NCBI GenBank assembly: GCA_038496445.1
Contig: JALMLS010000268.1
Location: 124,001 to 188,000 of the forward strand
Origin: Trichosphaerium sp. ATCC 40318
Taxonomy: Eukaryota > Protista > Tubulinea
Reading direction: 5' to 3'
DNA: 64,000 nt
Shown here: one piece after another, positions 9,287 through 49,299 of the stretch
How positions within the stretch are numbered: position 1 is the first letter of the stretch
Layout: each line of letters begins with the position of its first letter
The notes under the pieces: generated by a model
What the model saw: only the letters and a program-made list of their open reading frames with translations
Database searches by the model: none
Told to the model about the DNA's origin: nothing
Made by a program: the position numbers and the translations under genes

Positions 9287-12200
9287 ATGGACACGTTTTT
9301 ACTACCTTCTTTGATGGCTGAGCTAAACAAAGCCAAAAAACATTGGGAACTTCATGGTAATAACATTTTTTTGTTTTATTTTTTTTTTCATATCTATCGC
9401 TCGTTTAACACTTGGTTATCGGTATATAGGTAACGTTGTAGGTGAAGATCAATGTGAGTGTATAGCTCAACTTCTAGGAGAAACTGGTAGCATTAATTCG
9501 CTTGATCTATCCGGTACAAACTGCTTCGATTGGATTTTCTTTCGAACGGAAAAATGGCTTTCTATTTGTAGGTTTTTTTTAGCACCTCATATTTTCGAAA
9601 TAGATAACGCAATAGGCGATCATGGATGTCAAGAACTTTCACAATTGCTTCTAACACCCACGCTCACAAAATTAGATTTATCACGTGAGTGACTACAAAC
9701 GTTTTTTCGGTTTGATCTCATGTTAATATTTCGTCGTAGACAATTTTATTGGCAATGACGGGTGTCAAGCTCTTGCTGAAGCATTATCACAAAATCATTC
9801 TCTTACAGAACTCGTACTACACCGTATGTCATGCTAATAATTGCACCTTAATTCACAATGTGTAGATAATGTTATTGGAAACAAAGGATGCGAGGCTTTA
9901 GTTGAAATGCTTCAAACAAACTACACTGTAGCTCACATCGATCTGTCTAGTGAGTTAAACTAGTATGTACATACATGCTAGACACTAACAAGGTTCTTTT
10001 TTGAAGGTAATATTCTGAGCCTGGGACGTACTAACACAATGTTGACAACGCGGTTAGAAAAGAATTATACTCTGCTTGACTTTAACATTTCAGGCACAAT
10101 AATATTGCACGCTTGTCAAGTTTGTTAATTGAATTTGTAGATAATCATCACTTACCTTTATCTACTTTGGATGGTCTATTAGAAAGGAACAAACAAATAG
10201 CAGACTATATAACTACCCTCTATGCTTGTTTTTCGCCTGCAAGCGAGAAACAAGTACGACAAGTTGATATCAAAAACGTAAATCAACAAGTATTCCCTTC
10301 CAACAACATAAACTTCAAACTCGTGGTACTAGGTGCGATATTTTAAGACCTAACAGAATTCGCTATTAACTACTTTTAGGTCATGGAGGCGCAGGTAGGT
10401 AGTTCGCTTTAGGACTTACAGCTGATTTGATAAAGGAAAAACTACGATGATTAACAAATTGCGTAACATTCCAAAGTGTCATGTGACGTCTACTATTGGC
10501 ATTGATGTTACACCCCTAAAGTATTGTAATTTATAGTTTAGTTTTATCTTTAACATTTTTGGAGCGTAGGGTTAACCGGAGCGTACAGTTTAATGTTTAT
10601 GATTTCGGCGGTCAAATTGAATATTTGGATATACATGATTTATTCTTGTCTAATGCCTACACAACTTACATTGTTATGGTATGTATTTTATATATAATTT
10701 CATTGATTATAGTTATAGGTTGACATATCAATGGATGAAAATGATATTCACTTTCATGTTAATCAATGGTTGAAGCTTATTGAAGATAAACTTGGACAAA
10801 CAACCAGAAATTCCGTTGTTGTAGTAGGCTCAAAGTCAGATTTAGTATCTAAGAAGATACTCAAGTCTCGCTTATCTTTATTAAAATCAAGAACAGATCA
10901 TATCAGAGACTCAAGTGTTCTATTGTGTTCATCCGTAACAGGTAAGAAAAAAACAAGAATAGTTATAGACAACTTAAGTGTTCATTGTGTTAAGGCAAGG
11001 GTATATCATCTATTCGTAATATAATATCTTCAATGGGAAGAGATTTACTTAAACGTAATGATATGAAAGAAATACCTAATACACATTATTTGATATTGGA
11101 GATTCTGAAAGGACAAAAACCAATTTTTTTTCAGCTGTAAGAATTATCTTTTTTTTTCACCCCTAGTTTTTTTACCTTTTTATTTTCTTGTTAGAGACTA
11201 TGATTACCTTGATGAATGCGCTATAGAAACATCACATGAAATACAACGCGCACTAGAATTTTGGAACCAACACGGTCATATAATGTTCGAACAGGTGCGA
11301 TTCTCGTTAAGTTGGCAAAAAAAAAAGAGTTAATTTCCTTTAGAACTCTGGCGTCATTTGTACAAATCCTTCAAGTATGTCTAAGATATGTAGCGCATTT
11401 GTTGGGCATGATACACATATTGAACATCTTTTGGATAAAGCACAAGTGCAATGTGAAAAGTCTTCAATTGTTCAAAGAGACACAGCATTATCAAGACTAA
11501 AAGCACTTGATACAATGCAAGGTTGTAACGACCACACAGCAAACCAGATTTTAAGGTTTTTAACACGATTAAATATTTGTTGGCCCTTAACATCAAGAGA
11601 AATGGCACGTGACATATAATACTAAACTACGCTAGAATCTAATGTTTATTGCTTAGATTGAATATCAGACAGATGGGTAACAACAGTGAAAACAGAAAGT
11701 TAAGTCTTAACAATGGTTTAGGTTTATATTCCCAGGTTTGAGGCCCATTGCTGATATCATATATCTACCTCCTTTGAATGAAAAAGACTACAGAGAAAAG
11801 ATTATCGTGGAGAAAGATGGCCAGATTTTTGCATACAAATATCATAGAGACATAGAACAAACAAAGTATGTCATAAAAAAGTCTTGTTCATAGATTTTTC
11901 TTATAAAATACTCTCTAGACCGTATTCTATATTATCTGACATCTCAGTGATGCGATGGAAGTTCGTGCCTCCGAGGACATTCAAAAAAAGTGATTTTAAC
12001 CGATTCCAAGCAACTCATCGAGGTTTGTCTGAAGTTGAAAGTGAAAGATAAACTAACTTCTACTAGACGCTCTTGATATGCGATATGCTCTCTTCTGTAA
12101 CCAAATGATACTGAGAGACTTCTATGGAAATACAGTACTTCTTCATCTTCATACTGAAGGGTTCATAGAAGTTGTTGCTCGTGGCGTATGCCCAAAAATT

Positions 12201-14369
12201 GTAAAAGTGAGGCGCTGTTGATGAGCTTTTTTCTTTCTGACGCTTTATTTCGAGAACAACTTGCTCACATTGTTGGCTCCACATCAGTTTAAAGTATCCA
12301 ACGAGTCATATACGCCAGTTAAGCTTTGGGATATACCTTGCGCTGATAAATTATTAAAAGAAGACTACTGGGAAAGAGGACTCTGTGACAACGACTTTGA
12401 GTGGCTCACTCTGAGAGAAGATGCTCCTACTCAAGTACGAAAAATGTTTTATTTTGCATGGTTTTACTTACTCTGTTTGTTCTCTAGGTTCTTAAAGAAG
12501 CTTACTTAGTTGTTCGCAATATGTTTTATGATTTTGTTGGTAAAGAAAATAAGAACTACTACCAGTTGACAAAGGTGAAGTACTTTAATAATCCAATATT
12601 GGAAGAAGCTTTCGAGGCAACATACAATGAGTTTGTCAATGGATATCTTCAAAGCACAAATCCAATAAATAATAAGTCCTCAGAGGAAGGTACCCTATTT
12701 ATTTTAATGACATTGTTGTTCATAAAGAGCGATCTAGGAGCAGAAAGCGAGAAGACGAAATGGAAACAATGGTAAACTTTAGTTAAAAAGTGCTTTCTTA
12801 GAATATTCTTATTTTTTTGCTTTCACGTGCATCTATTTACTACTACAACTCATCATTTCTTAAGACTTTTATTATTAATTTAAACTTTTATTAGGATTGC
12901 AGATGAATTGGAAAAACATGTGATGCACGTGTCAGGAAATAAGAACATAAATTGTAATGGAAAAAAAAGTCAAGAAAAAATACAACCTATTGACACTTGT
13001 GTTTTTAGTGATCCTTGGCTGGCATACTGCTTCTGAAGAAGAAAGTCTAAAAATTGCTAGAGAAGGTTTCACAAGACCGAAAACTCTGGGACAAAATGGA
13101 GATTCGGGACAGTTCGGAAAAGGGTGAACATTTTTTTGGTTTTTTTTAAGTTGAACTTGTAAAGCTTACGGGTTTTTATGCAGAATATATTTCACTCAAT
13201 ACGCTGGTTATGGTATGAACTGATTGCCGTATTTTGTCAGTATGCTTACACTTTTAGGTTCAAAATATACAGACAAGAATCAACGGAACAGTATCCCAAC
13301 CGGAGAATCATGTAATGACAACAAAACGAAAATAACTTGTTCTCTAAATAATATACTTAGGTATGCTCCTTTCTTATGTACTTATGGGTAAACCCTATTT
13401 TGTTACTGATGAAAAAATGAAACATGGTAAAAAAGTACGTTTGCCAAGTATAATAACAACAATAATCCGGGTTTTTTTAAAAGAGAAATTATGATTCACA
13501 TTATGCCATTGTTGCTAGTGACGGTAAGACTATATGTAAGCCGCCAAAAAGTCCTCGTGATAAATTTGAAATGGAACCTTCTGGAGATGAGATTGTAGTG
13601 TTTGAGAAAGATCAGGTACTTATCCTCTAAGAAAAAGAAATAAATTTAAAACTAAGAATTCGTCTGCTTTTGTTAATAGGTTTTGCCAAAATTTCTTGTT
13701 TACTACTCACGGACAGGTCATCCAAGAATGAAAGAGCAGGAAGTAAAATGGAGAGATGTTGAGTATTTAATACTTTGGGTACGCCTTAATTGGATTAATC
13801 TGGCGACTAACTGACTGCAAAGTTCGATAAACTTACAGAACCAAATAGCAACTTAATCAAAAAAATTGAATCTAATACGGAACCACGTGTTGCGGTACAA
13901 AATTTCAACTATTGAGTTAATACTTATAAGGTACTTTAAGATTTTGAGAATGACTACACGTACAGAGATACGACTATGGTTACAGGATTATGGCGATAAA
14001 TACGCAGAAAAAATAAAAATAGTATTGAACAAGCTTGACTCAAACACAAATAGTTGTGAGAATATTATAAAGTAAGTACAAATAATTTTTCACATTTAAT
14101 TTATCACGTTAACTAATACACATAGATTAATCCGATCATCAAAAGAAAAATGGAAACATAAGCCTGTTTTGGTTGTAGAAGGTAAGTTTTTTTCTAAGAA
14201 AAATTGTCGGTTAAATAATTGTTTTGTTGCAGAGCGACCTGAACTTCAGAAGCATTTAGAAAATTATAATAACGTATATGTAAGTAAAGGTAGTGATGCT
14301 ATAGAACAATTTTGTTTAAAGAAACCTGAGACAACCTTCAAAACACTCATCACCAATTTATTCGCGTGA
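9287..14369 (+). CDS. Roco-type protein: LRR - ROC GTPase - COR-like - PARP-type ADP-ribosyltransferase - receiver-like domain
   Basis: RI-type LRR exons (NAIGDHGCQELSQLL, NFIGNDGCQALAEAL); G1 GHGGAGKTT, G2 STIGID, G3 YDFGGQ, G4 GSKSD; COR-like ALEFWNQHGHIMF and FIFPGLRP; ART motifs GWHTASEE, QFGKGIYFT, LLSYVLMGKPY, YDSH, GDEIVVFEKDQVLPKFLVYY; C-terminal LILWFD...PVLVV; TGA at 14367-14369. Confidence 0.85.
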
Positions 14370-14572
14370 AACAAAAAGAAAAAAAAAAGAAAAACAGTGT
14401 AAATAACATAAAACTCACCAAAATTATGATTGGAATCATAAAACGTCTTATTTAAATACAAGGCTCTAACACCAAAAGTCACTTTTTTCAGAAAGCGATT
14501 TTTTAGAAACCACGTGCCTCATACAAAATAAAACGTGCGCTCAAGTTTTTTGTTGTTATTAACTTACATGTT

Positions 14573-18515
<3,943 letters not shown>

Positions 18516-18845
18516 TTGTAGTTAGGCTACAAATAGCGTTCAGTGTCAGTCGTTGAGTGACAGATTGTAAAATGTCCAGGTCAACTTTGGTTTTTTGTCC
18601 GAAATAGTTAATTTTTTCTTCTCATGTTTTCGAGCTGGTTTGTGAGCACAGGTAACCCTACTAAAGTATGCAAGCTATCGTATTGGTACATCCTTGTGGA
18701 GTACTTTGTGTGGCGGTAACTGGAAAAAGTCACGTGTTTGCTACTAAGCGAGAGTTACCTTTTAAAAAGTAGCTTAAATATTGAATTGAAATAACGTTGT
18801 TTCAAGGTCGACAAACTTAGCCAAATTTATTTGTTCACACGATTT

Positions 18846-20357
18846 CTAGTTGTCTACTAATAGTTCTACAACACATTCAAATGGTGGACTAATTTCAAAA
18901 TCTTTTCCATGTGAAACACAACATGTGTCTTGGTAATGGGCAAAGTGTACTTGTTCTGGATCCATGAAGCAATCACCAGGAGCGAACTTTATCATATAGG
19001 GAATACGCAATATGTCATTAACATGCTGCGGAAACGCAAATAGTCTAGTATGTTGGTCGTCCCTCACATTTCTAAACTTCCTACAATCCAATTAACTTAA
19101 CTAACATAACATCTCTATACCATATTTCACCAGTACTGTACCGATATGTCACACTGATACCTTCAATAACTTTGAACGTAATGTGAGTTGCCGTAGTTTT
19201 ACCTTCACACGGTGGTTTTGGTGGACGATCCCTATTAAAAACAGTTAAACATAGAGTTGTGTACATACATCTTGTACACTTCAAATCCATACAACTGTTT
19301 GTGTAGACTATCAGATATATCGGATTCAGATCTAACAACAAGACAATGTATATCGGGGAAATACCCTGAGCACATATCTCCCCATTTTGATATCCACCAA
19401 CAGTTTTCTTCACATTCTCGTCTCCACAAGTAGCAAGCAAAAACACAAGGTAAACTTGATTCAATCTTCTTTGCCAATTCATAGTGCTTGGCCATACCTT
19501 GAACAATAATTAGCGTATAGTATAGTAATGTAACAAGTATGTCATACAAGCAAGTATCCACAAATCCGCTGAAGAATCCACATAGGGATCAATGTCATCA
19601 GAGCCTTCTTGGTAGTGTTTCCACATTAGATTTAAAACATCATGCTGCACAATTATTTGGACTTTCTTGTCAATGCAGTGTTGAATCCATTTTGATGTTG
19701 TTTCAAGGTGTTTCAACAAGTGTTTTAATACAGAAATACAATTATTTTGTATTTTAATCTCCATTAGTTGTTCGAAAGAAGCAACAGAAATAATTTGTCT
19801 TTGCAGTGTTTTGGCAATTGTATCATCTCCAACCTTGAAAGTATCAATTCCATAACAAGGTGTTCAACTTACCGTATATAATGATTCAAGTACTTTTAAG
19901 AAAACTCCAACATTACTACTTTCAATATGCTTCAAAGCCAATTTGGGATCACGATTTGAAAGAAAGTTGAGCATTGCCAAAACAGACTCCTTGGTCTCAT
20001 GTGATCGAATGATATAATCAAAAGCACCACCAGTGACATCTTTTAACATGTTGTTAAGGTGCCTACAATGTGTGTAAATACATAGCAAGAGATAAAAGGT
20101 ACTTACTTTGAGTTTAAGCATAGCAGTGCTTTTGATGCCTTAACAACCATGAGTGTATCGCTATTATCGTTTTTAATAAGTATTAGCAAATCGCATATAT
20201 GCTCATAATCACTGAGAGAAGGTAAATAGGTAGTAGCAATACTACAAAGCAGTTAGGTACAACATTAACAAGTTTCTTGCTCAATCTTTGGTTTTTTGTC
20301 TGCTTTTATGCACTCCTGTTTGACTACACGTTTTCTCTTTCTTGCAGTGGATGCCAT
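18846..20357 (-). CDS. BTB/POZ-like domain protein, paralog 1
   Basis: MASTARKRKR (NLS-like); spliced CDLLILI...VVKASKALLCLNS.HLNNML (BTB-like) then ESVLAMLNFL; same exon structure as paralogs 2-4; ends ISPPFECVVELLVDN. Confidence 0.7.
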
Positions 20358-21163
20358 TGCCGATATAAATTTATAAACTGGTTAAGTACCCTCGATACTT
20401 GAGAATAAGTAGAGAAAAGCACTCAAGTTTCTAGATTGTTCATAGCCACATGTGAACATTTACAACGTTTAAAAGTCTTGTTGTTGTTTACACGTGTGAT
20501 TGTCTATAAATCTATCGAACAAATACAAATTAGGAAAGCACGTGCCACAAGCTTGTTGCGATAGCTCAAAAAGTATTTTAACAATAGCGCTGGTGTTGTA
20601 GTATATGAGGAACCTCATTTTTTGGTAGATTCACACCAGGGAGTTATCTTTGATTGCGCCTACAACTCCAGTACTCAAAACGTTGACGTTTTGAGCACAA
20701 GTTTTTACAAAAATAGAACTGTGATTCCACAGAAATATTTACAACCTTTTTCTTCCCCAAAACGTTATCGTTTTGGAGCAACTTTTGATTAGACTTTTTG
20801 CTAATATTCTTTAAAAAACCTCTTCACTAGCCATCTAACAGAACGATTATGGGCCATTGGAAGGACAACAGACTTCTTGATGGCTAGTACAGCGCTTTGA
20901 AGTAGTATAAAGAAAAAAAGTTCACAAGAAATTTGGCCTTACGAGAGGTAGGTTTTGTTTTGGATTGAGGGTGATTCAGTATGGGGTACTAATTCAATTA
21001 ATACAACCATGGTACAAGGCCGAAGTGGATTGCTTTTGATGTTAGTCACATTAATGGAGTTGAGTGTCCTCCGTTGAGTTTCTTTAGTTTCGATTTCCAA
21101 ACCGTTTTATTTGTTCATTATTAAGTTCCTCAAGGCACTTAACCAAGGAAAAGTACAAAAGTA

Positions 21164-22736
21164 ATGGCAACACCTGCTACTACCGCGTCAAAGAGAAAAC
21201 GTAGAATTAACCCAGAGTGCTTGAAAGCGGACAAAAAACAAAAGATAGAGCAAGAACATGAACAAACGTACAAATTACCTCTTAACGTTGCCTAAAATGC
21301 TGTACTAGTGATGATTCTATCTCTTTGCCTTGTCTAGCAGAGTATCAACATTTATGTGATGTGTTTATAAACATTAAAAAAGGAGATAGTGATACACTCG
21401 TGGTTGTTAAGGCATCAAAAGTGATGCTTTCCTTAAACTCAAAGTAATATTTGGCATTACACGATTTCACCCACTCACTCATTGTAGGCACTTTAACAAC
21501 ATGTTAAAAGATGTAACTTGTGGTGCTTGTGATTATATCATTCGATCACATGAGACCAAGGAGTCTGTTTTGGCAATGCTCAACTTTCTTTCAAATCGTG
21601 ATCCCAAAATGGCTTTGAACAATGTCACAAGTGATAATGTTGGAGTTTTCTTAAAAGTACTTGAAACGTTATATACGGTAAGTTGAACATACGGCATGTT
21701 ATGGAATTGATACTTTCAAGGTTGGGGATGATACAATTGCCAAAATACTGCAAAGACAAATTATTTCTGTAGCCTCTTTTGAACAACTTACGCAGATTAA
21801 CATACGAACTAATATCCCAACTTGTATTTCTGTATTAATTCATCTGCGTAAACACCACTTAACAACGTCAAAATGGATTCAACATTGCATTGATAAGAAA
21901 GTCCAAATAGGAGTGCAGCGTGATATTTTAAACTTGATGTGGATACACTACCAAAAAGGTTCAGATAACTTTAATCCATACATTGATTCTTCGGCTGATT
22001 TGTGGATACTTACTTGTATGTCCTACTTATTACATTTATGCGCTTATTATTGTTCAAGGTATGGCCAAGCACTATGAATTGGCAAAGAAGATTGAATCAA
22101 GTTTGCCTTGTGTCTTTGCTTGCTACTTGTGGCGACATGGATATGAACGAAGATGTTGGTGGATATCAATATGGGGTAAAATGTGCTCAAGTTATTTTCC
22201 ACATATACAAACGCTTAAGTGTAGATCTGAATCTGACATATCTGATAGCATGTACAAACTATTGTACAAAAAGAAACAAATGTAAGCAAGTGTATGAGCA
22301 GCATGCACACTTCTATATTTAACTGGTTTTTAATAGCAATCGCCCACCAAAACCACCACGCCAAGGTAAAACAAGTACAGTCAATATTAAATTGGACATA
22401 CAAGGGTATAACCTACTAACAACTTACTGTGCTGGAGAACTATGGTAAGGCTTTAACATTCCACTTTGTTGATTTTTTAATAGGGACTTGCATGTTAAGC
22501 AACGTGCAAACCAAACAAAGGTTTATTTGTTTCCAAAACATGTTAGTGATATTTTACGTGTACCATACACAGTTAAATTTCATCCTAATAATTGTAAAGC
22601 TTCAGGAAAAGGTGGCATTTGCTTCTTCTACCAACCTGACAAAGATGGTGTAGTAAATTATTATGTGAGAAATTCCAAGACATTTGCAATTAGTCCTCCA
22701 TTTGAATGTGTTGTAGAAATAACAGTAGACAACTAA
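21164..22736 (+). CDS. BTB/POZ-like domain protein, paralog 2
   Basis: MATPATTASKRKRR; EYQHLCDVFINIK...VVKASKVMLSLNSKHFNNML; conserved GT-AG introns; ends ISPPFECVVEITVDN. Confidence 0.7.
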
Positions 22737-23359
22737 TTAAGAACACATTCAATAAATCAAACATCATTGTAAATGTGCTCTTGTCCGCCAGCTAGACTTG
22801 CTATAATTAGAGACCACATAACAATTTCATAAACATGAAGTTTTTTACTTGACCAAAATAAAGAATGCACGAAACCGAAGTGCATAGGCAACGCTATTTA
22901 ATGGGATGCGGCGGCATCGAAACATAAAAAATGAGAAAATAAAGCGAAAATCTCATGCTATGTATCTCGTTCAAGTGGTGGTAGCAGGTTGTCAAGTATT
23001 CTGTGGGAATAGTCTTGGCCTTATTTCATACATTTTTATTAATTTCAATAGTGTCTCGATACCAAAGCCAGTATGAAACCAGTTGTATCCTCCTTATCAG
23101 TTATTGCTTACAAACGTATACGTGTGAATCAATTAATTGTGAAGCACCAAGCCTGAATACCACAATAAGATCTTGCAGGCTGAACGTACATCAACAAGAT
23201 ATAAACAACGTGTTGAGCCAAAGTTGTAGTTAGACAACTTTTCGCTAGCTATCTGACAGAACTACGCCCTATTAGGAGCAAAGACAACCTTTTAGAGGCT
23301 ATTATAACGAGCTGAGGTTGTTGTATAAAGAAGGAACAAATAGTACTCAAGAATATTTG

Positions 23360-23866
23360 TAGCGATTCGACGTCGAATCGCTAGAGGCACTTAACTTCCA
23401 CTCTTAAGGCAGTATAGCGATTCGACGTCGAAGTCGAATCGCCGGAAGCACTTAATTGCACCAGTATGTCAGACTTAACGCAATTCTACCAATGTCTGAC
23501 TTGCCTGTGCAGAATCACTGAAGGTACTTTCACAAACGTTTCCAGTGAACATCATTGATATGAATAGGCGCTAAAAATCAACATCATACGCACTGGATGG
23601 TTTGTAGGTGTACTTTTTGGTAAAGAAGTAAGTGCTCTTTTTTTTACTCAGCAATGGAAAAAAAACTACAGCATGCGCATTCTCGTCCAAAAAACGTTTA
23701 AATCGTATCACTATGCTGTAGTCACTGTAAAAGAATGAGCAACCATAGAATCACTGGAGGTACTTAACTGCTTCCACTCTTAAGGGAGTATAGCGATTCT
23801 ACGTAGAATCGATAGACTGCCTTATGGTACAATTAAGTGTTTCTAGCGATTCGACGTCGAATCGAC
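23360..23866. repeat. Cluster of four palindromic hairpin units with inverted-repeat flanks (possible MITE/non-autonomous element)
   Basis: Perfect 24-bp palindrome TAGCGATTCGACGTCGAATCGCTA at 23360-23383; variants at about 23415, 23791 and 23844; flank CACTTAATTG(C/T)ACCA appears in inverted orientation at about 23449 and 23825. Confidence 0.75.
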
Positions 23867-24296
23867 ACTGATTTTTTGGTTATTTTTGCATCGTTCTATT
23901 TAGAATAGCCGCCTTGTAGAGACACGGATGAACAAGTAGTAGTGTCGTTTAACCGGTTTAAGCTACGACTGGCAAACTGTTATTGTTTTGTAGCCGTGCT
24001 CAAAAAAAAAATCAGTGAACCCAACAAAAATAGTAGACACGTGATTAATTGTAAACAAAAGAATTGAAATAAACACTATAAAGTGCACTCCTCGGCAAGA
24101 ATTTATTGCAATAGGGCCCCTCAGCACGTTGTACATGACTATTAATTCTTAATGGTTTTTGGTTTTGCGATAAATATTGCTTGAGTCTGCTCGTAAAAAG
24201 GAATCAGTTCTGAATGCAAAATTGTTTTGCAATTGTGTTCTGCAGTTTTTCCCAAAGGCCTTAATCTGGTTAAGAAACAAAGCTACTACATCGACA

Positions 24297-25832
24297 ATGG
24301 CAACTCCCGCCACAACAAAAAGAAAACGTATCATCGTGCAAGAGGACATAAAGCAAGACAAAAAACAAAAGATTGACATAGAAGATACACACATGTACAA
24401 ATTACCCTTCCTCGTGTTACATAACATTCTTTACTAGCGCTTCTTGTACCTCTTTGCCTTGTCTCGCAGAGTATCAACATTTATGTGATGTGTTTATAAA
24501 CATTAAAAATGGAGATAGCGATACACTTGTGGTTGTTAAGGCATCAAAAGTGATGCTTTCCTTAAACTCAAAGTAATATTCAACAACACGATTTCACCCA
24601 CTCACTCATTGTAGGCACTTTAACAACATGTTAAAAGATGTCACTGGTGGTGTTTGTGATTATATCATTCGATCACATGAGACCAAGGAGTCTGTTTTGG
24701 CAATGCTCAACTTTCTTTCAAATCGTGATCCCAAAATGGCTTTGAACAATGTCACAAGTAATAATGTTGGAGTTTTCTTAAAAGTACTTGAAACATTATA
24801 TACGGTAAGTTGAATGTCTTGTTATGGAATTGATACTTTCAAGGTTGGAGATGATACAATTGCCAAAACACTGCAAAAGAGAATTATTTCTGTTGCTTCT
24901 TTTGAAGTGCTGTTGCATATAAAAATACGAAGCATGACAACATGTATTTCTGTATTAACTCATCTGCTTGAACACATTGTAACAACTTCAAAATGGATTC
25001 AACACTGCATTGACAAGAAAGTCCAAATAAGGGTACAACATGATGTGTTAAACCTGATGTGGAAACACTACCAAGAAGACTCAGATTTTGTTCCATACAT
25101 TGATTCTTCAGCGGATTTGTGGATACTTGCTTGTATGACATACTTGTTACATTACTATACTATACGCTTATTATTGTTCAAGGTATGGCCAAGCACTATG
25201 AATTGGCAAAGAAGATTGAATCAAGTTTGCCTTGTGTTTTTGCTTGCTACTTGTGGAAACGAGAATGTGAAGAATACTGTTGGTGGATATCAATATGGGG
25301 GAAAATGTGCTCAACCTATTTCCCTAACATGGAGAACCTTATTTCTAGATCTGAATCAGACATATCTGATAGTTTACACAAACTATTGTATAGGATAAAA
25401 GTGTACAAGATGCAAACACAACTCTATGTTTAACTGTTTTTACCTATAGGAATCGCCCACCAAAACCGCCATCTGCAGGTAAAACACATACAACATGTAT
25501 TGATTTCCAAATAGACAGCTACGACACACTAAAAACATATATTACTGGAGAATTATGGTAAAGCCACATACAAAATTATTCGTTGATTGTTTAATAGGAA
25601 TCTGTGTCTCAAAAACGAAGAAAACCAAACTAGAATATATCTGTTTCCAGTACACACAAATGATATTTTACGTGTTCCTTACATGGTTAAATTCTTGCCT
25701 GAAAACTGCAAGGCTTCAGCAAAAGGAGGAATTCACTTTTATCACAAGCCTAAATGCTATGTTCAACATGCAAGTACATTTGCAATTAGTCCTCCATTCA
25801 GATGTGTTGTAGAATTATCAGTTGACAACTAA
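24297..25832 (+). CDS. BTB/POZ-like domain protein, paralog 3
   Basis: MATPATTKRKR; exons 2-3 nearly identical to paralog 2; ends ISPPFRCVVELSVDN. Confidence 0.7.
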
Positions 25833-26302
25833 CGAACAATCAATAAATCAAACATCATTTAACACAAAGTCCTTTTCAATCAAAAGTAGTGAAAGTAAAA
25901 GCTACAACCCATGAGATCGATTTACAGTGGGTTGATGCTTTCATCCGTCACATAATCACTGGCCGAGTGATAGAAATGTGTACTGAAAGTGAAAACACAC
26001 CTGTTGACAATAGTTATTGTAATACCCTAGAACACTGTACTCTCCATTGTTAGGAGGCACTTTTGGACATGCTAGATCGCATTTCATCAGTGTAGTTTGC
26101 GAAAGAAATCTTAGAAAACTGAAAATTGGTTGGGAGAAAAATGAGAAAACAAAACCCACGTGATCAAGTAGCGGTTTGTTATATTTTTGCGCTAGTTGCT
26201 CAAAAAAATAACTGTAGCTGGGCTACTGCCGCAAGTGCCATCTTTTAAAGAGGTTCACATTTTCAACCGCTTTGTTGGTTAACGTCAAAAAAACCAACAA
26301 CA

Positions 26303-27850
26303 ATGACAACGGCTCCTACACGAGCGAAAAGAAAACGTGCAGGAAAGAAAGGAAACGTGAAAGCAGAAAAAAAACAAAAGATAGAGCAGGAACAACCGTA
26401 CTAACTACCTTTTGTAATATCGCCCTTAAATTGCTGCTAGTACTACACTTGACACCGTCTCTTTACCGTGTCTTGCAGAGTATGACCACTTGTGCGACAT
26501 TTTAATAGCTCTCAATAAAAGCGATGGTGCTCGCCTTGCAGTTGTTAAAGCATCTACAGCGATGCTGTCCCTAAACTCAAAGTAACCAACCCACGTGTTT
26601 TACTGTATTTGACTGCATTTTAGGTACTTTAACAATTCATTAAAAGATGTTGCCGGAGGAGCTTTTGATTATATCCTAAAAACCCATGAAACGGAGGAGT
26701 CTGTTTTGGCGCTATTGAACTTTCTTTCGAATCGAGACCGAAGGGATGCCTTGAAAAGCGTTAAAAGAACTAACACTAAAATTTTCTTAAAAGTACTTGA
26801 AACTTTGTACATGGTAAGTTAGACAAAATTATTATTGTACCAGTAATTATCATCATAGATTGGGGATGACACAATCGCCAAACCACTACAAAGACAAATT
26901 ATTTTGGTGTCGTCTTTTGAACAGCTCACGCAAATCAAAATACAAGGGAAACTTGCAACTTGTAAGCTCGTATTAACTCACCTGCTTGAACACTACGATA
27001 CAACTACAGAATGGATTCAACACTGCCTCAACAAGAAAGTCCAAATAAGAGTACAACATGATGTTTTAAACCTGATGTGGAAACACTACCAAGAAGGTTC
27101 GGATAACTTTAATCCGTACATTGATTCTTCGGCTGATTTGTGGATACTTGCTTGTAAGTACTACTTGTTACATTACTATACTATACGCTTATTATTGTTC
27201 AAGGTATGGCCAAGCACTATGAATTGGCAAAGAAGATTGAATCAAGTTTGCCTTGTGTTTTTGCTTGCTACTTGTGGAGACGACAATGTGAAGGAAACTG
27301 TTGGTGGATATCAAGATGGGGGAAAATGTGCTCAACATATTTCCCTAACATGGAAAACCTTATTTCTAGATCTGAATCAGACATATCTGATAGTGTACAC
27401 AAACTATTATATAGGATAAAAGTGTACGATGTATGTACACAACTCTATGTTTAACTGTACTTAATAGGAATCGCCCACCAAAACCACCATGTGAAGGTAA
27501 AACACGTACAACAAGTATTGACTTCCAGATAGACAGCTACGACACACTAGAAACATATAGCACTGGAGAATTATGGTAAAGCCACATAAACAATTATTTG
27601 TTGATTGTTTAATAGGGGTTTGTGTCTTGATAAAGAAGAAAGCCACACTATGATATATCTGTTTCCAGTACACACAAATGATATTTTACGTGTTCCTTAC
27701 ATGGTTAAATTCTTGCCTGATAACTGCAACGCTTCAGCAAAAGGAGGAATTCACTTGTATCACAAGCCGAAAAGCTATGTTCGAAACGGAAAGACATTTG
27801 CAATTAGTCCTCCATTCATGTGTGTTGTAGAATTATCAGTTGACAACTAA
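26303..27850 (+). CDS. BTB/POZ-like domain protein, paralog 4
   Basis: MTTAPTRAKRKR; EYDHLCDILIAL...VVKASTAMLSLNSKYFNNSL; 3' half nearly identical to paralog 3; ends ISPPFMCVVELSVDN. Confidence 0.7.
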
Positions 27851-27961
27851 CGAACAATCAATAAATCAAACATCATTTCATCTCAAACACAATTGAATGT
27901 CAATTACTTTTTAATCTAACAGAAGTTTTATCTAACAAAACAGCTTACAATTAATACCAAG

Positions 27962-29499
27962 TTAGACAACTGTAAACATGTTAATCCCCTGAGAACTCAA
28001 AACACAACTATCACCAAGTGCTTTAATACCTTCAGATGTTATTTTATCACAACCTCTTATGTTAACATGGCGAGCACCTACAATATAACTTATACCTACA
28101 TCTGTAATCTCCCTACATCTGTTAAGGGTTATATCAAAAACACCACCAAGTTGAGATAAACCTTCATCCGTAATAGAAGTTAATCCTGTCAAATCAATCT
28201 TCTTAACACCTCCCAAAGCCTTCAACCCTCTATCAGTTACATTACAACCTTTAATACCAATGGAATATACTCCAGCAAGCTCTATAATGCCATCATCTGT
28301 TACTTTGGTACCAGTAAGGGAGATGGTGTGTACACCCTTTAATGCTTTGATACCCACATCCGTTACTTTGGAGCAAAGAGATAAGTCTATTTCATGAACA
28401 CCAGCCAAGGCTTGAACAGCCTTATCATTGACTTTACTACAACCAAATAGATTTATAGTATGGACACCAGCAAGACATTCAATAACACTAGGCTCAATCG
28501 ATTCAAAGTCACAAAGATCAATAGTGTGAACTCCAGCAAAAGCGGCAAAACCGCATCCTTTAAAATTAGGACAGTCTTGAATCGAAAAATACTTAATGCC
28601 AGTTAAGTGCTTGCTGAATTCTTCATTAACCTTCAGCTCCGATAAATGAAGTGAATGTATACCTGCAAGTGCTTCAAAGCCGTATCCTTTGATTAGGGAG
28701 TTTTGTGTGCACATCAAGGAGTGAACACCAGCAAGACATTCAATACCTTTATCTGTAATTTTATGACAACTGATCATCTCTATTGTATGTACACCTGCAA
28801 TGTAAGACAAGCCTTGGTCTGTAATAGAACAATGTCTCATACTAATAGTATGAATACCTTCTAATGCCTTAAGTATTTCATCATTCGCTTGATAATTACT
28901 AAGGTTTATAGTATGTATACCTCGAAGAAAATGTAAATATTCACTTGGGAGACGGTAATAACTAGACTCCAAATCAAGGTACTTAACACCTGCCACGTGT
29001 TTTAACCAATCAACAGGTGGTTTGGAATTATCAATAGCAAGAGACTTTACACCTTTTAATAGCTTGAAGACATCAGCAGTGAGTCCGCTACAACCTCTAA
29101 TGTGAAGTGTTTTCGCTGTTGGGAATAATGCTATTGCTTCGTTTGTTATGAGCCTACAGTTTGTCATATCGATGTGTTGGGCTCCAGCAAGAGGTATTAG
29201 ATCTTTATCAGTTACTTTCAAGTACTTGCAAACGATTAGAGAGTGTTTAAGGATATTTTCGTATTTAGATATTGCAGCGATGTGTTCTTTATTTCTAATG
29301 GTTACTGTTGCGTATGTTGTAACGTGGTGTATAATATCCGCCAACATAGTACACGTTTGAGCAACGCTAAATTTAGAATGCTGTAGAAACGAGAATATTG
29401 TTCCTAAGACCTCTGGTGGCATCGAACAAAGTGAAATACTAGGCGTAAAACGTCAAACACAAAAAAAAATTGTTATGTGCCCTTATCTTACCTCTCCAT
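27962..29499 (-). CDS. F-box/LRR-repeat protein
   Basis: Short first exon (ATG at 29499, then gtaag donor); F-box LCSMPPEVLGTIFSFL...VAQTC; many LxGVHTIxLxxCxxITDxGI repeats in a single exon. Confidence 0.85.
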
Positions 29500-38094: not shown

Positions 38095-38261
38095 TTCGAT
38101 GCAATATCACTATAGCACCTCGTAAAACCGTATTTAAAGTTCACGTGACAAAGTCATAATTATTGAATCAAGAATTAAGTGAACATTAGCTGAGAGGACA
38201 CCCCCTGAAGTTCAACATCGATCAAACTCTCAAAACTCAAACACCAAAGCAACACATCAAC

Positions 38262-38623: not shown

Positions 38624-38920
38624 TCCACACATCATTGCATAGTATTGCTTGTAACCGCACTCCAGTAAACAAAACATTCAATAAAGCTAGCGTTTTGTTA
38701 TCTTTTCCGTTGCGCCATTCTGTTTTTTCTTATCCATAGTTATGGTTTTTAGTCGTACAAGAGCAGCGTCACAAACAGTAAGTATACGTATGAGTACTTC
38801 GTAATTGTGCACTCAGTAGGTGTATGTACGTGAATTTATAGTTAACTTAATATTCACGTATTCCGTAAATAGGCGAGTACTTGACAAAAAAAGTCCGTCC
38901 TGTTAATTATTTCTTCAGTT

Positions 38921-41721: not shown

Positions 41722-42551
41722 ATGAACGCTCTTACTCTCACTCTTGTCCTTTCTTTTGTTTGTGCATCATCATGTGTACTGATTAGATTTTCTCACGCGT
41801 CTACTTTTACACCTGCAGTTGATGTATATTTGAACGATCTTCCAGTAAGTTGCAACTTAGTATAAAAACCCGTGTTTACTCCTCTCCAGGTGTTCAGAGA
41901 CCTCGAGTTCAAGGAAACTTCAGACTACATTACTGTACCTCCTGCGAAATACAACGTCACAGTCCGTTTAAGTGGGAATGGATTTCGCTTTATTCAAATT
42001 AAGTAAGTGTACTTTAAGATATTCAGGATACTGTTATTGATCACCTACTAGCGATTTTGATATCACCAATGCTCAAGTTGTCACTGTAGCTGCTGCTGGA
42101 TTATTAGAACAAATAAAAACTGTTGTACTCACGGATGATAACAGACTCCCACCAGCTGTACGTGAATGAGTTAGACAACTATTTGCCACAATGTAGTGAA
42201 AAAGAAGTTGCCAAAGTTTTTCATTCTTATGATGGTTCGTTCGTTTATCTAACTGTATTGTTTCAATAGGGATACTCTGTTTTGCGATTCGCTCATTTTA
42301 TTCCTGATGCACCTGCCGTTGATATAGCCGTTGATGGAGAAGTTGTATTCACATCAATTACTTACACAAAATCGTCAAATTATGCCCAAATAAAAGCAGG
42401 CAAACATAACGTAGAAGTACGTGTTGCTGGTACTGATAAGGTAGTTATTGCTGTCAATGATATTGAGCTCGTATCTAAAAGTATATACTCTATTTTTGCT
42501 GAAGGTGTACTAAACAACACTATTTATGCTGTATTGGAAAATGACTTGTAA
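41722..42551 (+). CDS. Secreted DUF4397-like protein (two tandem repeats)
   Basis: Signal peptide MNALTLTLVLSFVCASSC; repeats IRFSHASTFTPAVDVYLND...DYITVPPAKYNVTV and LRFAHFIPDAPAVDIAVDG...YAQIKAGKHNVEVRVAGT; three introns. Confidence 0.75.
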
Positions 42552-43138
42552 TTTCTCAATAAACAAGTTTGGCTACTGTTATTGCCAAGCTACTATGATA
42601 ATTGTATTTTTGTTCTCAAAGTATTGTTCAATGTCCTGTATAGCTACTGAAGTTGTTGGAACAACAATACTTTCCCTAATTGAATGAACATTACAATGTT
42701 CTATTATTCCAAAAAAGGCCAGATAATATTGCCTTCCCACAATTTTTTTAGTATTTCTTTGAATCGTCCTTTGAACTACACGATTGTACAATGGTGTATT
42801 TCAGATTTACTTATTAGTAATAAATCAAGGTACACGAATAATATTTGAAAAGTAAAGCGAATTATATTCTGCTTTCGCTAAAAATAAAAAGGAAAAGTCA
42901 ACTTTAATAAACACGTTCTCTCGTTTCACTTTGTTCGTTGATATTTACACTGTAACTAACTCCTACACAACATTCTTGTTGGATTATTCTGTACAAAAAA
43001 GAGACGATTATTGGACATTGTACCGGTATTGTTATTTAATAGCACTTTCTTTGCGCTTGCAGTGGTTTAAGCTTAACTTTTCTGTTTTAGTTCGAAAATA
43101 TCTCGAACTCGGTTTAATCTACCGTTCTGTGTTTAAAT

Positions 43139-46100
43139 ATGGCCAACATTGATAGTACAGACAACGGTAAGTGAAACTCCTCAATTTTCAGGCCACACCT
43201 TTTTTTTTTTTTGGTAGTCACGTGCTACAATTTTCATGAGAAACTTTTCCGCTTTTCGGCGTGGGCTACCCAGGACCACACTTTTTTGCTAGAAAAATTT
43301 GCTGGAGCGTTTTTTCGCACACAATTTTGGCGCTGTCACTAAAACAAACAAAAGTGTTTGGTTTAGTATGTCCGCGCAAACCCACAAATTATTAAATCTT
43401 TTTGTGTGAAAGACTTTTGATAAGTCCAAAGAAGTTTACTCTCACTAAAAACCAATTAAAAACATTATTTGGCATCACTGTGCATAGAGGATGCTACGTA
43501 GGCATTATTTCAACTTTTTGCAAATGAGAAAATCGCAAGAAAACTTTTTCGTGATAAATAAAAAAAAGCGCAAAAGATTTTTTCTTTACTTTGTTGTGCT
43601 TATTTTTTGTACTCACAAAGGTTTGGATGTTACAAAACAGTATGAACTAGGAGGTCATCTCAGATATAAGGGAGAGGTAAAGAATGGTAAGCACAACGGT
43701 TTTGGTGAGCTGTATCGTATAAAAGGTATCGGCGAAATCAAACAAGGTGATACTCTCGAATACAAAGGTCAGTTTAAGGACAATAAGTTTCATGGTGATG
43801 GTGAGTTGTATCTCTCAGATGGTACTCTACAATACAAAGGTCAGTTTAAGGGCGGTGAGTATCATGGTGATGGTAAGCTGTATCGCACAAATGGTACTCT
43901 ACAATACAAAGGTCAGTTTAAGGACGGTGAGTCTCATGGTGATGGTGAGTGGTATGTCTCAAATGGTACTCTCGTATACAAAGGTCAGTTTAAAGGCGGT
44001 TTATTTCATGGTGATGGTGAGTCTTATTCGTGTGGTAATCTCTATTACAAAGGTCAGTTTAAGGACCACAAACGTGACGGTTTTGGTAAGCTGTATCTCT
44101 CAGATGGTACTCTCGAATACAAAGGTCAGTTTAAGGGCGGTGAGTATCATGATGGTAAGCTGTATCTCTCAGATGGTACTCTCGAATACAAAGGTCAGTT
44201 TAAGCACAATGAGTATCATGGTGATGGTGAGTTGTATCGCACAAATGGTACTCTACAATACAAAGGTCAGTTTAAGGACGGTGAGTTTCATGGTGATGGT
44301 GAGCGGTATGTCTCAAATGGTACTCTCATATACAAAGGTCAGTTTAAAGGCGGTTTATTTCATGGTGATGGTGAGTCTTATTTGTGTGGTAATCTCTATT
44401 ACAAAGGTCAATTTAAGGACCATAACCGTGACGGTTTTGGTGAGCTGTATCATATAAAAGGTATCGGCGAAATCAAACAAGGTGATACTCTCGAATACAA
44501 AGGTCAGTTTAAGCACAATGAGTATCATGGTGATGGTGAGTTGTATCTCTCAGATGGTACTCTCAAATACAAAGGTCAATTTTTGAACAACCAGTATAAC
44601 GGTGTTGGAGTGTATTTTTATCTAAATGGTACCAAGTACATTGGACAATTTGACAACAATAAGGTTCATGGTATTGGTGCGAAGTATTGGCCAGATGGTC
44701 ATAAATACATTGGTAAATTTGAGAATGCTAAGGCAGTAGGTAAAACACAGAAAAGTATTGCTGGAAAACCAGACCAGGTTGCCTTTTCTAACAATATGGA
44801 TAAAACATTCTGTGAAGAATCCTTTTTCCCTAGTAATGATATACAAGAAGATATAACACCAGTCACTGTGTGTTCTGATGGCACTACAGATGCGAGAGAT
44901 CTCAAGAAATTGTTTCCGAATCCAGATAATACTATACTTGATATCAATGTTGGAAGTGTAAAAGATAGACCAGATGGAAAAAGAAGAATGGTATTTGAAT
45001 TTTATTCTAAAAGACACTACCAATACTGTAACAGTATTATTTTGCAACAAGATAGGTCTGACTCAGGTCATTCTGGCGATATTGTATTTATCTATGACCT
45101 TTGTAAAAAAGATCCTGAGATATCACTTCATGAAGGTACAGTCTTTTAACCACTATCTTTATACTTATTGATTATTTAAATAGTAACAATTATGGCACGT
45201 GGTCTTCCTGGAGTACGTGTGATACCCCTACAAAAGGACAAAATATCAGACAAAACGATACAACAGTTTAAACACATTTATTGGTATGACCTCAGTAAAA
45301 AGGCTAGTTTAGTGAGACATCATATTGTTGATGGAGTGAGTAATAACAACTACGATTTTGTTGAGCAATTAGAAGCCAAAATAATGGTTATGGGCCATGA
45401 AGGATCAGGTATTTAAGCTTGGATGAGTGATACACTAAATATTTATTAGGCAAGACTACACTTGTGAGGACATTGGCAAAGGAAACAAATACGATAGCGG
45501 ATTCAACAATTGGTTTTGATACATCACATCTCTCGTATATTCTACACTTGTAGCATCATAGGTTTAATGTGCTTTAGGTTCCATGGCGTATCATTCACAG
45601 TGTTAGACTTTGCTGGACAGACGGAATATAAAGGATTGCATAAGTACTTTTTGGCAAAGCAACTTACAATTTACATCATCGTTGTAAGTTTGTAGTGCAA
45701 TATCACACTTGTTTTATCATTTATCAACTTTAGATTGACTTGTCAACATCAATCAAAGAGCAGCAGGAACACCTCAGATATTGGTGTCGGGCTTTAAATG
45801 AGATACTACATGATCAAGACCCAGAGCTATACTCAGTGATTGTATATGGATCCAAATTGGATATCTTTTTAGGAGATATCAATGCCAATAAACAATCACT
45901 GCTCCCTATTGGACCATTGCTAGTACAGTACTTGTGCTTTGACGGTACCACCTTTATAACGTTTTTTACAATCGCTTATCCTTGTTGTTTAGGAACAAGT
46001 GCTCTCGTTAAATTATTGGATCAGCAAGCCAAGCACTTGAAGGCCCAATATCCAAAAGTACCATTGATGTACATAGACATAAAAAAAGCACTTGAGAATA

Positions 46101-49100
46101 CAATCACAAACAAGGATACCCTCAAGGGTAACGTCATATCAGTGTATGTTGTGTTTTAGCTGCAGTGGATGTTCCTTGCTGATCAAGTATTTAATTAGGA
46201 GGAAAGTATTAGAAGTGATACCCAAGACATGTAAAATGTCTCCAATAGAGTTGATTGCAGCATTGAATTACCTTCATTCCATTGGTAGCATCATGTTTGA
46301 TGAGGTGCGCGCTTCTCAAATGAGTAGTATGCTTGCTGAAACAACTGACTTGTCTGTGTTTAGTCATCGTACATGCTATGTTTGAACCCTCCTATTCTAT
46401 CTCATATCATGAGTGCATTTCTAGCTCCCAAAGAACATCTTGATAGATTGATCAAAAACAACAATCACAATCATTGTGCCGTATTCACCGACGCAGAAGC
46501 TACATCTCGAATCTCAAAGCTATTTCCAAACTGCAATGAACGTGAAGTGAAGCAGGTGATGGACTTCTTGGTACAAATGTCGTTCTGCGTTCGCTTGACA
46601 GAAGAAGAAAAGGTAACAGATACTGCATGTACTCTACAACTCATAGTCATGTACTTATTCAGGTTGTGTATGGCGCTGATGGATACCTTATTATATCTCT
46701 ATTACCTAAAGCTGATATGTTTTACTGTCTTCCATTGACACAAAAGGAGCAAAGTATTAGGTTAGTTCAGACAAAGAACAAGAACCCACATGAGTTACCA
46801 GAAGTATTCTCTTTATCTAAATCACCAACAAAATGGAAGATATTATCGTACACACCTACAACAGACTCTAAAGTTGCACATAAAGTGGTAGAAACAGTCA
46901 CCGTAAACAAGGAAACCAATAAAATAGTACGGCGTTTATAACAATCAAAACTAATATCACGTGTTAGTCACTACCTGATGAATATGAGGTCACACCACAT
47001 GATTCAAAGTTCTTGGCATACACTTTCAACTCGCAAGATCTACCTATAGACATATTTAATGACTTACAGAGAAGACTGAGAAGTACGCCAACATGAACGG
47101 TTTATGATAAGATACTAAACACTAAAAATAGAGTTCCAAATTAAAGAGTTTCGTTTGTTTTCGAACTTGATTGTACTCTCTGATTTCTATGGCAATATCA
47201 TCACATTATATTATGTTGATCAAAGCATCAAAATTGTCATTAGAGGCATAGTACCGCGGCTATGGATGGTAATAACATGAACTAGAAATTTAAACATTGA
47301 CACTGTTAGGAATCTCTTGATACTTACCTAAAACCTTTGAACATCACTCCAGCTCCACTATGTCCAGTCAGCATACAATTTGGACAGTTTGTTGAGGTTA
47401 CAAACGATTCATATGAGTGCAAGAAGACAAGTGAGTATTAGGCATACATTTATACACGTGTAGTTGTCATACATTATACAATTAGGCCATATTTCCAAGT
47501 TAACTAACTGATTATTTCTTAGAACATGTTGTCACTGAGAGTCATTTAAAAGAAGGATTTCCTGTACTCGAACATGCACGACATAGTCTATGGGGTAGCT
47601 TACACGGAGAAAGATTTCTAAAAATAGGTAACTGGAAAACACCTCCAAAGTATCCTGGGTTACGAATCACGTTTCTCACAAAAGATGAAAAAAACGAAGT
47701 ACAAACCACATGAATAGCTTGACTTTCTTACTAAAGCATTGATATAAGGAACGTTACGATGAGTATTTGAGAGCTAGCACCATGTTTTATAAGTTCATGG
47801 GAACTGACAGTGCTTCATTTTATGAGTTGGAGAAGATTGCGTTCTTGAGCAATCCAAAACTTGAAGACAAATTTGAGGAGCAATACAATACTTTTGTCAA
47901 GAAAGTACTTCAATCTAAAAAATCAAGTAAGTCACACCCAAAGTCAGCTTTTTCTAATAGCATAGATGTGAATGACAATTCCACTGTGGATGAAGATACA
48001 CGTAAATTACAAGAACGGACTTTGAATCATTTGAAGAGCCATGTGATGCTTGTTTCAGGCAATGAGCAAATCAACCTCATACCTGGATTACATGGTACAT
48101 CAGAGGTATATCACATTTATTCTCATCAGTATTCAAGAAATAGTTAACCTTAGATTTTAGGATTCTAGTTTTAAGATTGCTTGGAGCAACTTTAGAGAAC
48201 CACACGAGAATACAAACAAGAAAGATCCAGGATACTTTGGTATGGCTTAGTACCAAGTTAGTTTAATTAACTAAAATTGCAAAGGAGATGGTATTTACTT
48301 TACTCAGTACGCTGATTGTGGTAAGTCATATACAATCAAAGCTTGCTCACTCAACCAATTTTGTATTCTTGTACTAACAATTGAGGTAGGAAGGAAGTAT
48401 GCTGAATGGAACAAAGAGAAAAATCCACGCATGTTGATATCATGGATAATGCTGGGAAACCCTTATCCAGCGACAGAACAACCAGTGCTAGGTGATCCCA
48501 ACTCTCTTCTTGGAAAAGAATGCAAGGTACAACTCTTTTTTTCTCTATGTGACTTCTTATTGGTTTTTTTTTAGAAAGGTTATGATTCTCACTATGTACT
48601 CACTAAATCAACAAATGGGTATCCATGTGGCATTGATGATAAAATAGATCAAAACGAGATTGTTGTATTTTCAAAAAACCAAGTATGTAGACATCACCGC
48701 TTAGCCTTTCTGCCATTATTCAACAATGTGTTCTTATTTAATGGTTTAGATTCTTCCACGATACCTTGTGTACTACAAAGCAATAGACAGTACCAATATC
48801 AAGTCATATGAACTCAAGTACAGGGATGCTAAATGTCTTGTTTTGTGGGTTGACGCTAATCTATCAGTTGAAAACAAGAAGATAATGGAAATGCTTCAAA
48901 AAAGGCCAAAGAAGACAGAGGTACACAAACCAAATTAAGCGATTCATCTAAAGAACTACAAGGTATTGGTAATGGAGTCATCATCTCAGGTCTTGGCATG
49001 GATTGATAAGTTCAAAGGGTTCTGTAACAACAGGTTACGTATCATCACAAATAGATATCGAAAAGGTGATGGAGATGAGAAAGCAGCAGAGAAATTGATC

Positions 49101-49299
49101 AAGAGTATAAGAAAAATTAAAACATGTGCCAAAACACCTATTCTTGTTTTTTGTGGTATGTCAACTACCCTTTATTAATCACGTGATTTTTTTGTTAACA
49201 CATAGTATGTTAGGAGACACTTCAAAGGCAAAATACCTCACGAAAAAATACAAGAAGGTATCCATCACGAATAAAGTTCAAGATGTATTGGAAATTTAG
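43139..49299 (+). CDS. Roco-type protein: MORN repeats - ROC GTPase - COR-like - PARP-type ADP-ribosyltransferase - receiver-like domain
   Basis: Exon 1 MANIDSTDN joins in phase to GLDVTKQY at 43621; MORN repeats YKGQFKxxxxHGxGxxY; G1 GHEGSGKTT, G2 STIGF, G3 LDFAGQ, G4 GSKLD; COR-like ALNYLHSIGSIMF; ART motifs GLHGTSE, DPGYFGDGIYFT, LISWIMLGNPY, GYDSH, QNEIVVFSKNQILPRYLVYY; receiver-like VLWVD...IITN...PILVFCG; TAG at 49297-49299. Confidence 0.85.
43660..44735 (+). repeat. Coding tandem repeat of about 69-bp MORN units with higher-order duplications
   Basis: Recurrent TACAAAGGTCAGTTTAAG...CATGGTGATGGTGAG; the insert AAAGGTATCGGCGAAATCAAACAAGGTGATACTCTCGAA occurs identically at about 43722 and 44457. 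Confidence 0.9.

Follow-up and report, generated by a model that had tools for sequence, protein, structure and literature searches.

Two paralogous Trichosphaerium genes predicted to couple a Roco-type GTPase to a PARP-type ADP-ribosyltransferase

We analysed 64,000 nucleotides of the protist Trichosphaerium sp. ATCC 40318 (assembly GCA_038496445.1, contig JALMLS010000268.1, positions 124,001 to 188,000 of the forward strand). This whole stretch is hereafter the window, and coordinates are positions within it. With a base composition of 33-40% G+C and abundant short GT-AG introns (40-100 nt), many of which have a CTAAC-like branch site, it is eukaryotic DNA. Two of its genes, which we call A and B, encode a Roc GTPase domain, a COR-like region, a PARP-type ADP-ribosyltransferase (ART) domain and a C-terminal domain related in fold to receivers. 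A previous sequence-only reading had proposed this order for both genes, and we find it on the plus strand at the positions below. That reading had also assigned leucine-rich repeats (LRRs) to the N-terminus of one gene and MORN repeats to that of the other, and both assignments stand. Automatic gene models from dynamic programming were over-spliced or ran through introns. They were replaced by hand-curated models, for which the paralog served as reference and a translated comparison of the two loci as guide. The parts of the two genes are as follows.

9287-14369, plus strand: gene A, 31 exons, 1130 residues; LRR, Roc, COR-like region, PARP-like ART, pseudo-receiver
9430-10332, plus strand: gene A, RI-type LRRs in phase-1 exons 9430-9513, 9604-9684, 9740-9823, 9866-9949 and 10007-10093, with a cap/linker exon at 10141-10332
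10380-11136, plus strand: gene A, Roc exons; G1 split between 10380-10394 and the exon starting at 10436, G3 DFGGQ in 10570-10678, G4 SKSD in 10719-10941
11195-12434, plus strand: gene A, COR-like region and linker, aligning to the COR-like region of relatives
12488-13757, plus strand: gene A, PARP-like ART; His in 13009-13123 (GWHTAS), Tyr in 13184-13212 (IYFTQYA), Glu in 13484-13615 (GDEIVVF)
13758-14369, plus strand: gene A, C-terminal pseudo-receiver (CheY-like), aligning to relatives; three joints confirmed by RNA
43139-49299, plus strand: gene B, 22 exons, 1527 residues; MORN, Roc, COR-like region, PARP-like ART, pseudo-receiver
43621-44700, plus strand: gene B, MORN array (Pfam MORN, E 1.5e-27)
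44701-45329, plus strand: gene B, stretch of about 200 residues between MORN and Roc, with no Pfam match and no counterpart in relatives
45330-46127, plus strand: gene B, Roc exons; G1 GHEGSG/KT split at 45408/45450, G3 DFAGQ in 45578-45683, G4 SKLD in 45734-45944
46213-47698, plus strand: gene B, COR-like region and linker, aligned to relatives, with a remnant of a CPxC...CxxGH motif
47749-48821, plus strand: gene B, PARP-like ART; His in LHGTSE at the end of 47749-48105, Tyr in GIYFTQYA in 48285-48320, Glu in NEIVVF in 48575-48682
48822-49299, plus strand: gene B, C-terminal pseudo-receiver (LVLWVD ... RIITNR ... ILVFCG), fold taken from the relative P0006

Both start codons (9287 and 43139) are preceded by in-frame stops, and the reading frames end with stop codons at 14369 and 49299. 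All introns of gene B are GT-AG and measure 41-94 nt, except the first (454 nt). The least certain part of this gene is the first exon with its start codon, for which there is an alternative ATG at 43491. As a predicted model, gene B looks intact.

BLASTP aligns protein A (residues 217-1083) with protein B (568-1497) in one stretch, with 28% identity and an E-value of 2e-95, a resemblance far beyond chance. Moreover, 12 of the 19 core introns of gene B coincide with gene A introns in both alignment column and phase, and two further ones lie within three columns of a gene A intron. The five intron positions on which the sequence-only reading had based the paralogy of the two genes are all shared in column and phase, together with seven more. 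The shared positions span Roc, the COR-like part, the linker, the ART and the C-terminal domain. Hence, the unit from Roc to the C-terminus was one gene before the copies separated. Judging from these sequence comparisons, genes A and B are paralogs, as had been claimed, and old ones.

Pfam finds nothing but MORN on single window exons of A and B, since each domain extends across many short exons. We used relatives as stand-ins. With the gene B exon 47749-48105 as query, a full HMMER scan that covered 1.84 billion representatives returned 16 matches, and word-indexed protein searches added few further family members. Three relatives were particularly informative. P0006 (1131 residues) is a single open reading frame (ORF) filling a 3.9-kb Logan contig, P0031 (933 residues) is likewise a single ORF of a Logan contig, and both carry Pfam Roc and PARP. 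P0013 (1508 residues) is a Trinity transcript of Clydonella sp. ATCC 50884 from EukProt, with Pfam ankyrin repeats, Roc (43 bits, cutoff 27) and PARP (30.3 bits, cutoff 26.7). Clydonella, an amoebozoan, is the only named source among the relatives of A and B. Overall, Pfam scores on the relatives were 43-50 bits for Roc (cutoff 27) and 30-52 bits for PARP (cutoff 26.7). Gene B aligns to P0006 in one stretch (residues 575-1526 against 136-1126, E 6e-94) and to P0031 with an E-value of 5e-96; gene A gives one BLASTP alignment with P0031 (E 4e-76). Since A and B are collinear end to end with single-ORF relatives, a mistaken merging of neighbouring genes is very unlikely.

This bears directly on the explanation that our models fuse a Roc gene with a separate, neighbouring PARP gene. 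No RNA molecule running from Roc to ART is present among the contigs of the window, as this explanation would have it. Nevertheless, the single ORFs P0006 and P0031 and the Clydonella transcript each hold both domains. In the window, the stretch between the Roc and the ART parts has neither a stop nor a plausible start or terminator, and the shared introns and the collinearity extend over two paralogs and four outside loci. We consider the fusion of neighbours close to refuted; the placing of Roc and ART in one gene is upheld.

The Roc domain is well defined. Intact G1 to G4 motifs had been reported for both genes, and the multiple alignment confirms them: G1 GHGGAGKT, switch I STIG, G3 DFGGQ and G4 SKSD in gene A, and GHEGSGKT, STIG, DFAGQ and SKLD in gene B. 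P0006, P0013 and P0031 all score above the cutoff for Pfam Roc. The best solved matches of a family profile of this domain are LRRK2 (E 1.6e-12), the Roco proteins of Methanosarcina and Chlorobium (MbRoco and CtRoco) and LRRK1, with 4wnr, 3dpu and 6hlu among the top structures, and Rabs rank lower. We found no STAND NTPase (NACHT or NB-ARC), apart from one stray sub-threshold NPHP3_N match in one member; the switch is a Roc GTPase.

The region after Roc is weakly supported as COR, and for that reason we call it COR-like. Its support comes from the relatives. Pfam COR-A appears in the correct place, below threshold, in three of five members (E 0.044-0.24), and COR-B, also below threshold, in one (0.18). 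In an ESM-Atlas feature search with residues 335-640 of P0006, the ten best named clusters were all COR-A/COR-B (0.95-0.96, 181-196 features in common). The COR part gave only noise in a profile search of the PDB, and an AlphaFold model of Roc-COR built from a five-sequence alignment was unusable past Roc (predicted local distance difference test, pLDDT, below 50).

Between COR and ART, a CPxC...CxxGH motif with the look of a small zinc ribbon occurs in P0006 (about residues 640-670), in P0031 (about 420-450) and in the metagenome contig L004. The corresponding segment of gene B (47310-47430) lacks the second Cys, and in gene A it is mostly lost.

The ART domain has, on the structural model of a relative, a PARP fold with an H-Y-E triad, and its activity is predicted. 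PF00644 scores above the gathering threshold on six relatives, and the gene A domain is 35-38% identical to the PARP-positive relatives P0003, P0005 and P0007. A profile of the region matches PARP4 (the best solved match, E 2e-9), PARP2 and PARP12, with His, Tyr and Glu aligned to the catalytic residues of PARP4. An AlphaFold (AF2) model of P0006 residues 700-1131 reached a mean pLDDT of 74. Foldseek matched it to PARP1, PARP10, PARP13 and PARP4 at probability 1.0, and VIA-align to PARP13, PARP15 and PARP10 at Z 13.4-13.7. No kinase family is among the Pfam matches of the full-length relatives P0006 and P0013, which have a PARP domain in that place. PARP4 also carries H-Y-E, yet its PDB entries name it a mono-ADP-ribosyltransferase; the output of A and B may be mono- or poly-ADP-ribosylation.

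A domain with a PARP fold may also be a pseudo-enzyme, like PARP13 or TASOR, whose part is to read or to bind NAD+ or ADP-ribose; the proteins would then be scaffolds and not writers. PARP13 and the TASOR pseudo-PARP match the model at the same Z as active PARPs. In addition, the usual HG[ST] reads HTAS in gene A and HAN in Clydonella, and the loops around the Tyr motif are of low confidence in the P0006 model. We regard this explanation as improbable, because His, Tyr and Glu are all kept in the five full-length sequences compared (A, B, P0006, P0031 and P0013), at an overall identity of about 25-30%, and because the profile aligns the triad to that of PARP4.

Neither Pfam nor PDB has a sequence-level match for the C-terminal domain. 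Its fold comes from the P0006 model, in which residues 307-432 of the model numbering match dozens of response-regulator receivers (Z 12.6-14.4, root-mean-square deviation about 2 Å over 110-120 residues); the Atlas feature search also points, weakly, to this fold class. An acidic residue is retained after beta1. At the end of beta3, P0006 has Asn (ITN) where receivers have the phospho-acceptor Asp; after beta4 it has Cys (FC) for Thr/Ser, and after beta5 Asn (TN) for Lys. The ITN motif is kept in gene B, P0031 and P0013, and gene A has VLN. Lacking all three of these residues, the domain is a pseudo-receiver. The receiver-like domain of the sequence-only reading is thus right as to its CheY fold, and differs from a true receiver in its missing phospho-acceptor. 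Taken together, the profile and structural comparisons on relatives recover the Roc, the PARP fold and the CheY fold, with COR remaining weak.

Besides bacterial receivers, a human protein (PDB 28tm, released 2026; "uncharacterized Rossmann fold protein") matches the pseudo-receiver equally well, at Z 13.5.

Gene A is represented in RNA contigs from one public run of low depth, which contains about 6% of the sampled words of gene A; the contigs concern this gene only. They are spliced and carry Illumina adapter, and therefore derive from RNA. The contigs confirm the joints 11294/11344, 13894/13941 (which keeps the frame), 14071/14126 and 14181/14233, join a 5' untranslated exon near 9230 and place the 3' end near 14417. 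Gene A is transcribed, and may be partly compromised. Its model has two putative GC donors, at 10094 (gcacaa) and 11605 (gcacgt). Furthermore, the contig over 11054/11195 (151 nt, depth 2), the sole one there, uses a donor at 11055, 82 nt upstream of the modelled one, and meets a stop ten codons on. This splice form may indicate a compromised gene, or it may be just a minor isoform.

These features raise the question of whether gene A is decaying or truncated, in which case two T-to-C changes at donors and the out-of-frame splice would leave mostly an LRR-Roc stub or no protein. Both GC donors stand in a poor context, and the contig with the early stop has the same bearing, at low RNA depth. 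On the other hand, the reading frame is open over all 31 exons with no internal stop, including the three RNA-confirmed joints of the C-terminal domain. The donor at 11605 lies exactly at an intron position shared with gene B, GC-AG introns function in eukaryotes, and the depth-2 contig may be just the minor isoform. On balance, we find decay of gene A possible, and somewhat unlikely.

The N-terminal modules vary among members of the family. Gene A has four clear RI-type LRRs of 27-28 residues and one or two degenerate ones, with one repeat per phase-1 exon of 81-87 nt; the unit reads xNxIGxxGCxxLxxxLxxNxxLxxLDLS. In gene B, the MORN DNA is a tandem array of a 72-nt unit (9.4 copies) with a 354-nt higher-order unit present twice. 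As the two 354-nt units are 92% identical, the array has undergone a recent internal duplication. Among metagenome contigs, L001-L003 carry a collinear gene with LRR, Roc, COR-like, PARP and receiver-like parts, and L004 one with ankyrin repeats in place of LRRs. The LRRs of gene A are at most 48% identical to the LRR ORF of L001 (tblastn). We built a maximum-likelihood tree of the core from all available full-length rows, seven long-branched sequences. The ankyrin-type Clydonella sequence groups with the LRR-type L001 (97/92), and the ankyrin-type L004 with P0006 (100/100); genes A and B fall on the L004/P0006 side. Repeat type (LRR, MORN or ankyrin) is out of step with this tree, which fits module exchange. 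The tree and the domain calls are suggestive of N-terminal modules having been exchanged between members, in agreement with the swappable repeats proposed from the window alone.

The contigs L001-L003 (GC 58%) are gene-dense and intron-poor. The LRR-type relative adjoins a P450, a protein kinase and an SMG1-like PI3K-related kinase, and the contigs also carry many ORFs without Pfam matches. They may come from a compact eukaryote or from a giant virus.

Other genes in the window encode F-box/LRR proteins, a DOCK-type exchange factor, a sulfatase and a calponin-homology protein. ORF translations read by eye show an isoleucyl-tRNA-synthetase-like gene on the opposite strand, immediately past the 3' end of gene A. 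An unannotated gene family with at least four copies on both strands occupies 19084-27847; the copies have peptides such as GIDTFKVGDDTIAKTLQRQIISVASFEQL and IVQGMAKHYELAKKIESSLPCVF in common, and their sole Pfam match is a weak one to DUF4411 (E 0.006). A sirtuin-like stretch is followed closely, on the same strand, by MORN_2 repeats (Pfam E 9e-20); Pfam does not confirm the sirtuin-like motif, at 53349-53597. If the sirtuin part is real, the window would have, 3.5 kb from gene B, a second MORN protein joined to an NAD+-using enzyme.

14700-18600, minus strand: isoleucyl-tRNA-synthetase-like gene
About 19.1-20.1 kb, minus strand: copy of the gene family with GIDTFKVGDDTIAKTLQRQIISVASFEQL and IVQGMAKHYELAKKIESSLPCVF
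About 21.4-22.7 kb, plus strand: copy of the same family
About 24.8-25.8 kb, plus strand: copy of the same family
About 26.9-27.8 kb, plus strand: copy of the same family
27965-29452, minus strand: F-box and LRR protein in a large single exon (Pfam F-box, LRR_6, LRR_4)
52843-53597, minus strand: MORN_2 repeats and sirtuin-like stretch
55074-56045, minus strand: second F-box and LRR protein in a large single exon (same Pfam families)

Our results lead us to favour, as the probable explanation, that genes A and B belong to a lineage-expanded subfamily of Roco (LRRK2-family) proteins with a PARP output, acting as GTP-gated ADP-ribosyltransferases. If LRRK2 and bacterial Roco proteins are a guide (PMC6337361), the downstream enzyme would have its activity set by the nucleotide state of Roc-COR and by its dimerisation. 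The ART would use NAD+ to ADP-ribosylate its own protein or a target, and the N-terminal repeats would bind or recruit a partner, a ligand or a membrane. The dead receiver might serve as an intramolecular lid or as a docking, regulatory or dimerisation surface, and not as a phosphorylation site. In the cell, the proteins may act in signalling, trafficking or defence.

Several points weigh against this explanation. The folds, and all Pfam domain calls except MORN, come from relatives at about 28% identity, and among these the COR gives no significant sequence or structure match by PDB profile or AlphaFold. The model of gene A requires the GC donors at 10094 and 11605, the sole RNA contig over 11054/11195 is out of frame, and no contig spanning Roc to ART was found among the gene A contigs of the one low-depth run. 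Finally, gene A has Thr where PARPs carry Gly after the catalytic His.

The layout of these proteins invites comparison with NLR receptors, and a defence role, which would be NLR-like by analogy, has to be weighed. As immune receptors, they would sense a pathogen or danger ligand through the repeats and switch through Roc-COR, and the ART would modify targets of the pathogen or the host or deplete NAD+, leading to defence or cell death. The tripartite order of repeat, NTPase and effector, the variation of repeat type out of step with the core tree and the recent tandem duplication in the gene B MORN array would all suit such a role. It would also be in line with the fusion of mollusc Roc-COR proteins to TIR or Death domains (PMC9334734) and with the occurrence of Roc-COR proteins in bacterial conflict systems (PMC7159879). 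Nevertheless, A and B are old paralogs with 28% identity and not a fast-turnover pair. MORN repeats, moreover, usually bind membranes. In addition, the known Rocos, namely LRRK2 and the Dictyostelium proteins, work in signalling and trafficking (PMC6337361). We consider an NLR-like role unlikely. Slightly less likely still is its fuller form, in which the family would constitute amoebal innate immune receptors with a Roc-COR switch for the STAND ATPase, interchangeable repeat sensors and a GTP-gated, NAD+-consuming PARP effector. If true, the sensor-switch-effector design of NLRs would have been arrived at independently here, as a third solution. The variable sensors make the family a reasonable candidate for protist immunity.

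As for the explanation that we favour, a Roco subfamily with a PARP output, its interest lies in the coupling itself. The control of the output domain by Roc-COR is still a central problem in LRRK2 research, and a Roco with an easily assayed NAD+-using output would offer an independent test bed. It would also be the first case of a PARP-type enzyme governed by a GTPase switch in cis. The sequence-only reading knew of no described family with this architecture, and our searches agree: the full-text literature searched holds no Roco or Roc-COR protein joined to a PARP or ADP-ribosyltransferase, the conflict-system papers name Roc-COR without a PARP fusion, and the surveys of PARP evolution that we checked mention no Roc, Ras or GTPase partner. 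A review of Roco proteins (2019) has three groups, LRR-RocCOR, LRR-RocCOR-kinase and DAPK1, with no PARP or ADP-ribosylation (PMC6337361). Within the literature searched, the Roc-COR-PARP combination is undescribed.

The outputs of known systems differ from that of A and B in several ways. PARPs (PARP4; PARP10, PARP12, PARP13 and PARP15; PARP1 and PARP2) share the ART fold, the H-Y-E alignment seen with PARP4 and PF00644 on the relatives. Unlike them, the ART of the window has no WGR, BRCT, macro, WWE or zinc-finger partners, carries an insert of about 50 residues before the His motif and is fused to a GTPase. CheY receivers have the same (beta-alpha)5 fold and acidic residue after beta1 as the pseudo-receiver, which has Asn for the phospho-acceptor Asp, Cys for Thr/Ser and Asn for Lys. 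NLR/STAND receptors follow the same logic of repeat sensor, nucleoside triphosphate switch and effector, and their LRRs are of the RI type, as in gene A. In A and B, however, a Ras-like GTPase stands in place of the NACHT or NB-ARC ATPase and the effector is an ART; the likeness is by analogy only.

Among Roco proteins, the front half of gene A (LRR, Roc and the COR-like region) resembles group 1 (MFHAS1 and the Chlorobium and Methanosarcina Rocos). Those proteins end after COR, whereas the window proteins run about 500 residues further with the ART and the receiver-like domain. The overall plan of the Roco kinases of group 2 (LRRK2, LRRK1 and those of Dictyostelium) is the same as that of A and B: repeats (ankyrin or LRR), Roc, COR (COR-like in A and B), a catalytic output and a further C-terminal domain. 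The kinases have a protein kinase and WD40 where this family has a PARP-type ART and a CheY-fold pseudo-receiver, and in this family MORN can stand for LRR. The mollusc fusions to TIR or Death provide a further parallel, as there too Roc-COR is joined to other domains, in that case immune adaptors (PMC9334734).

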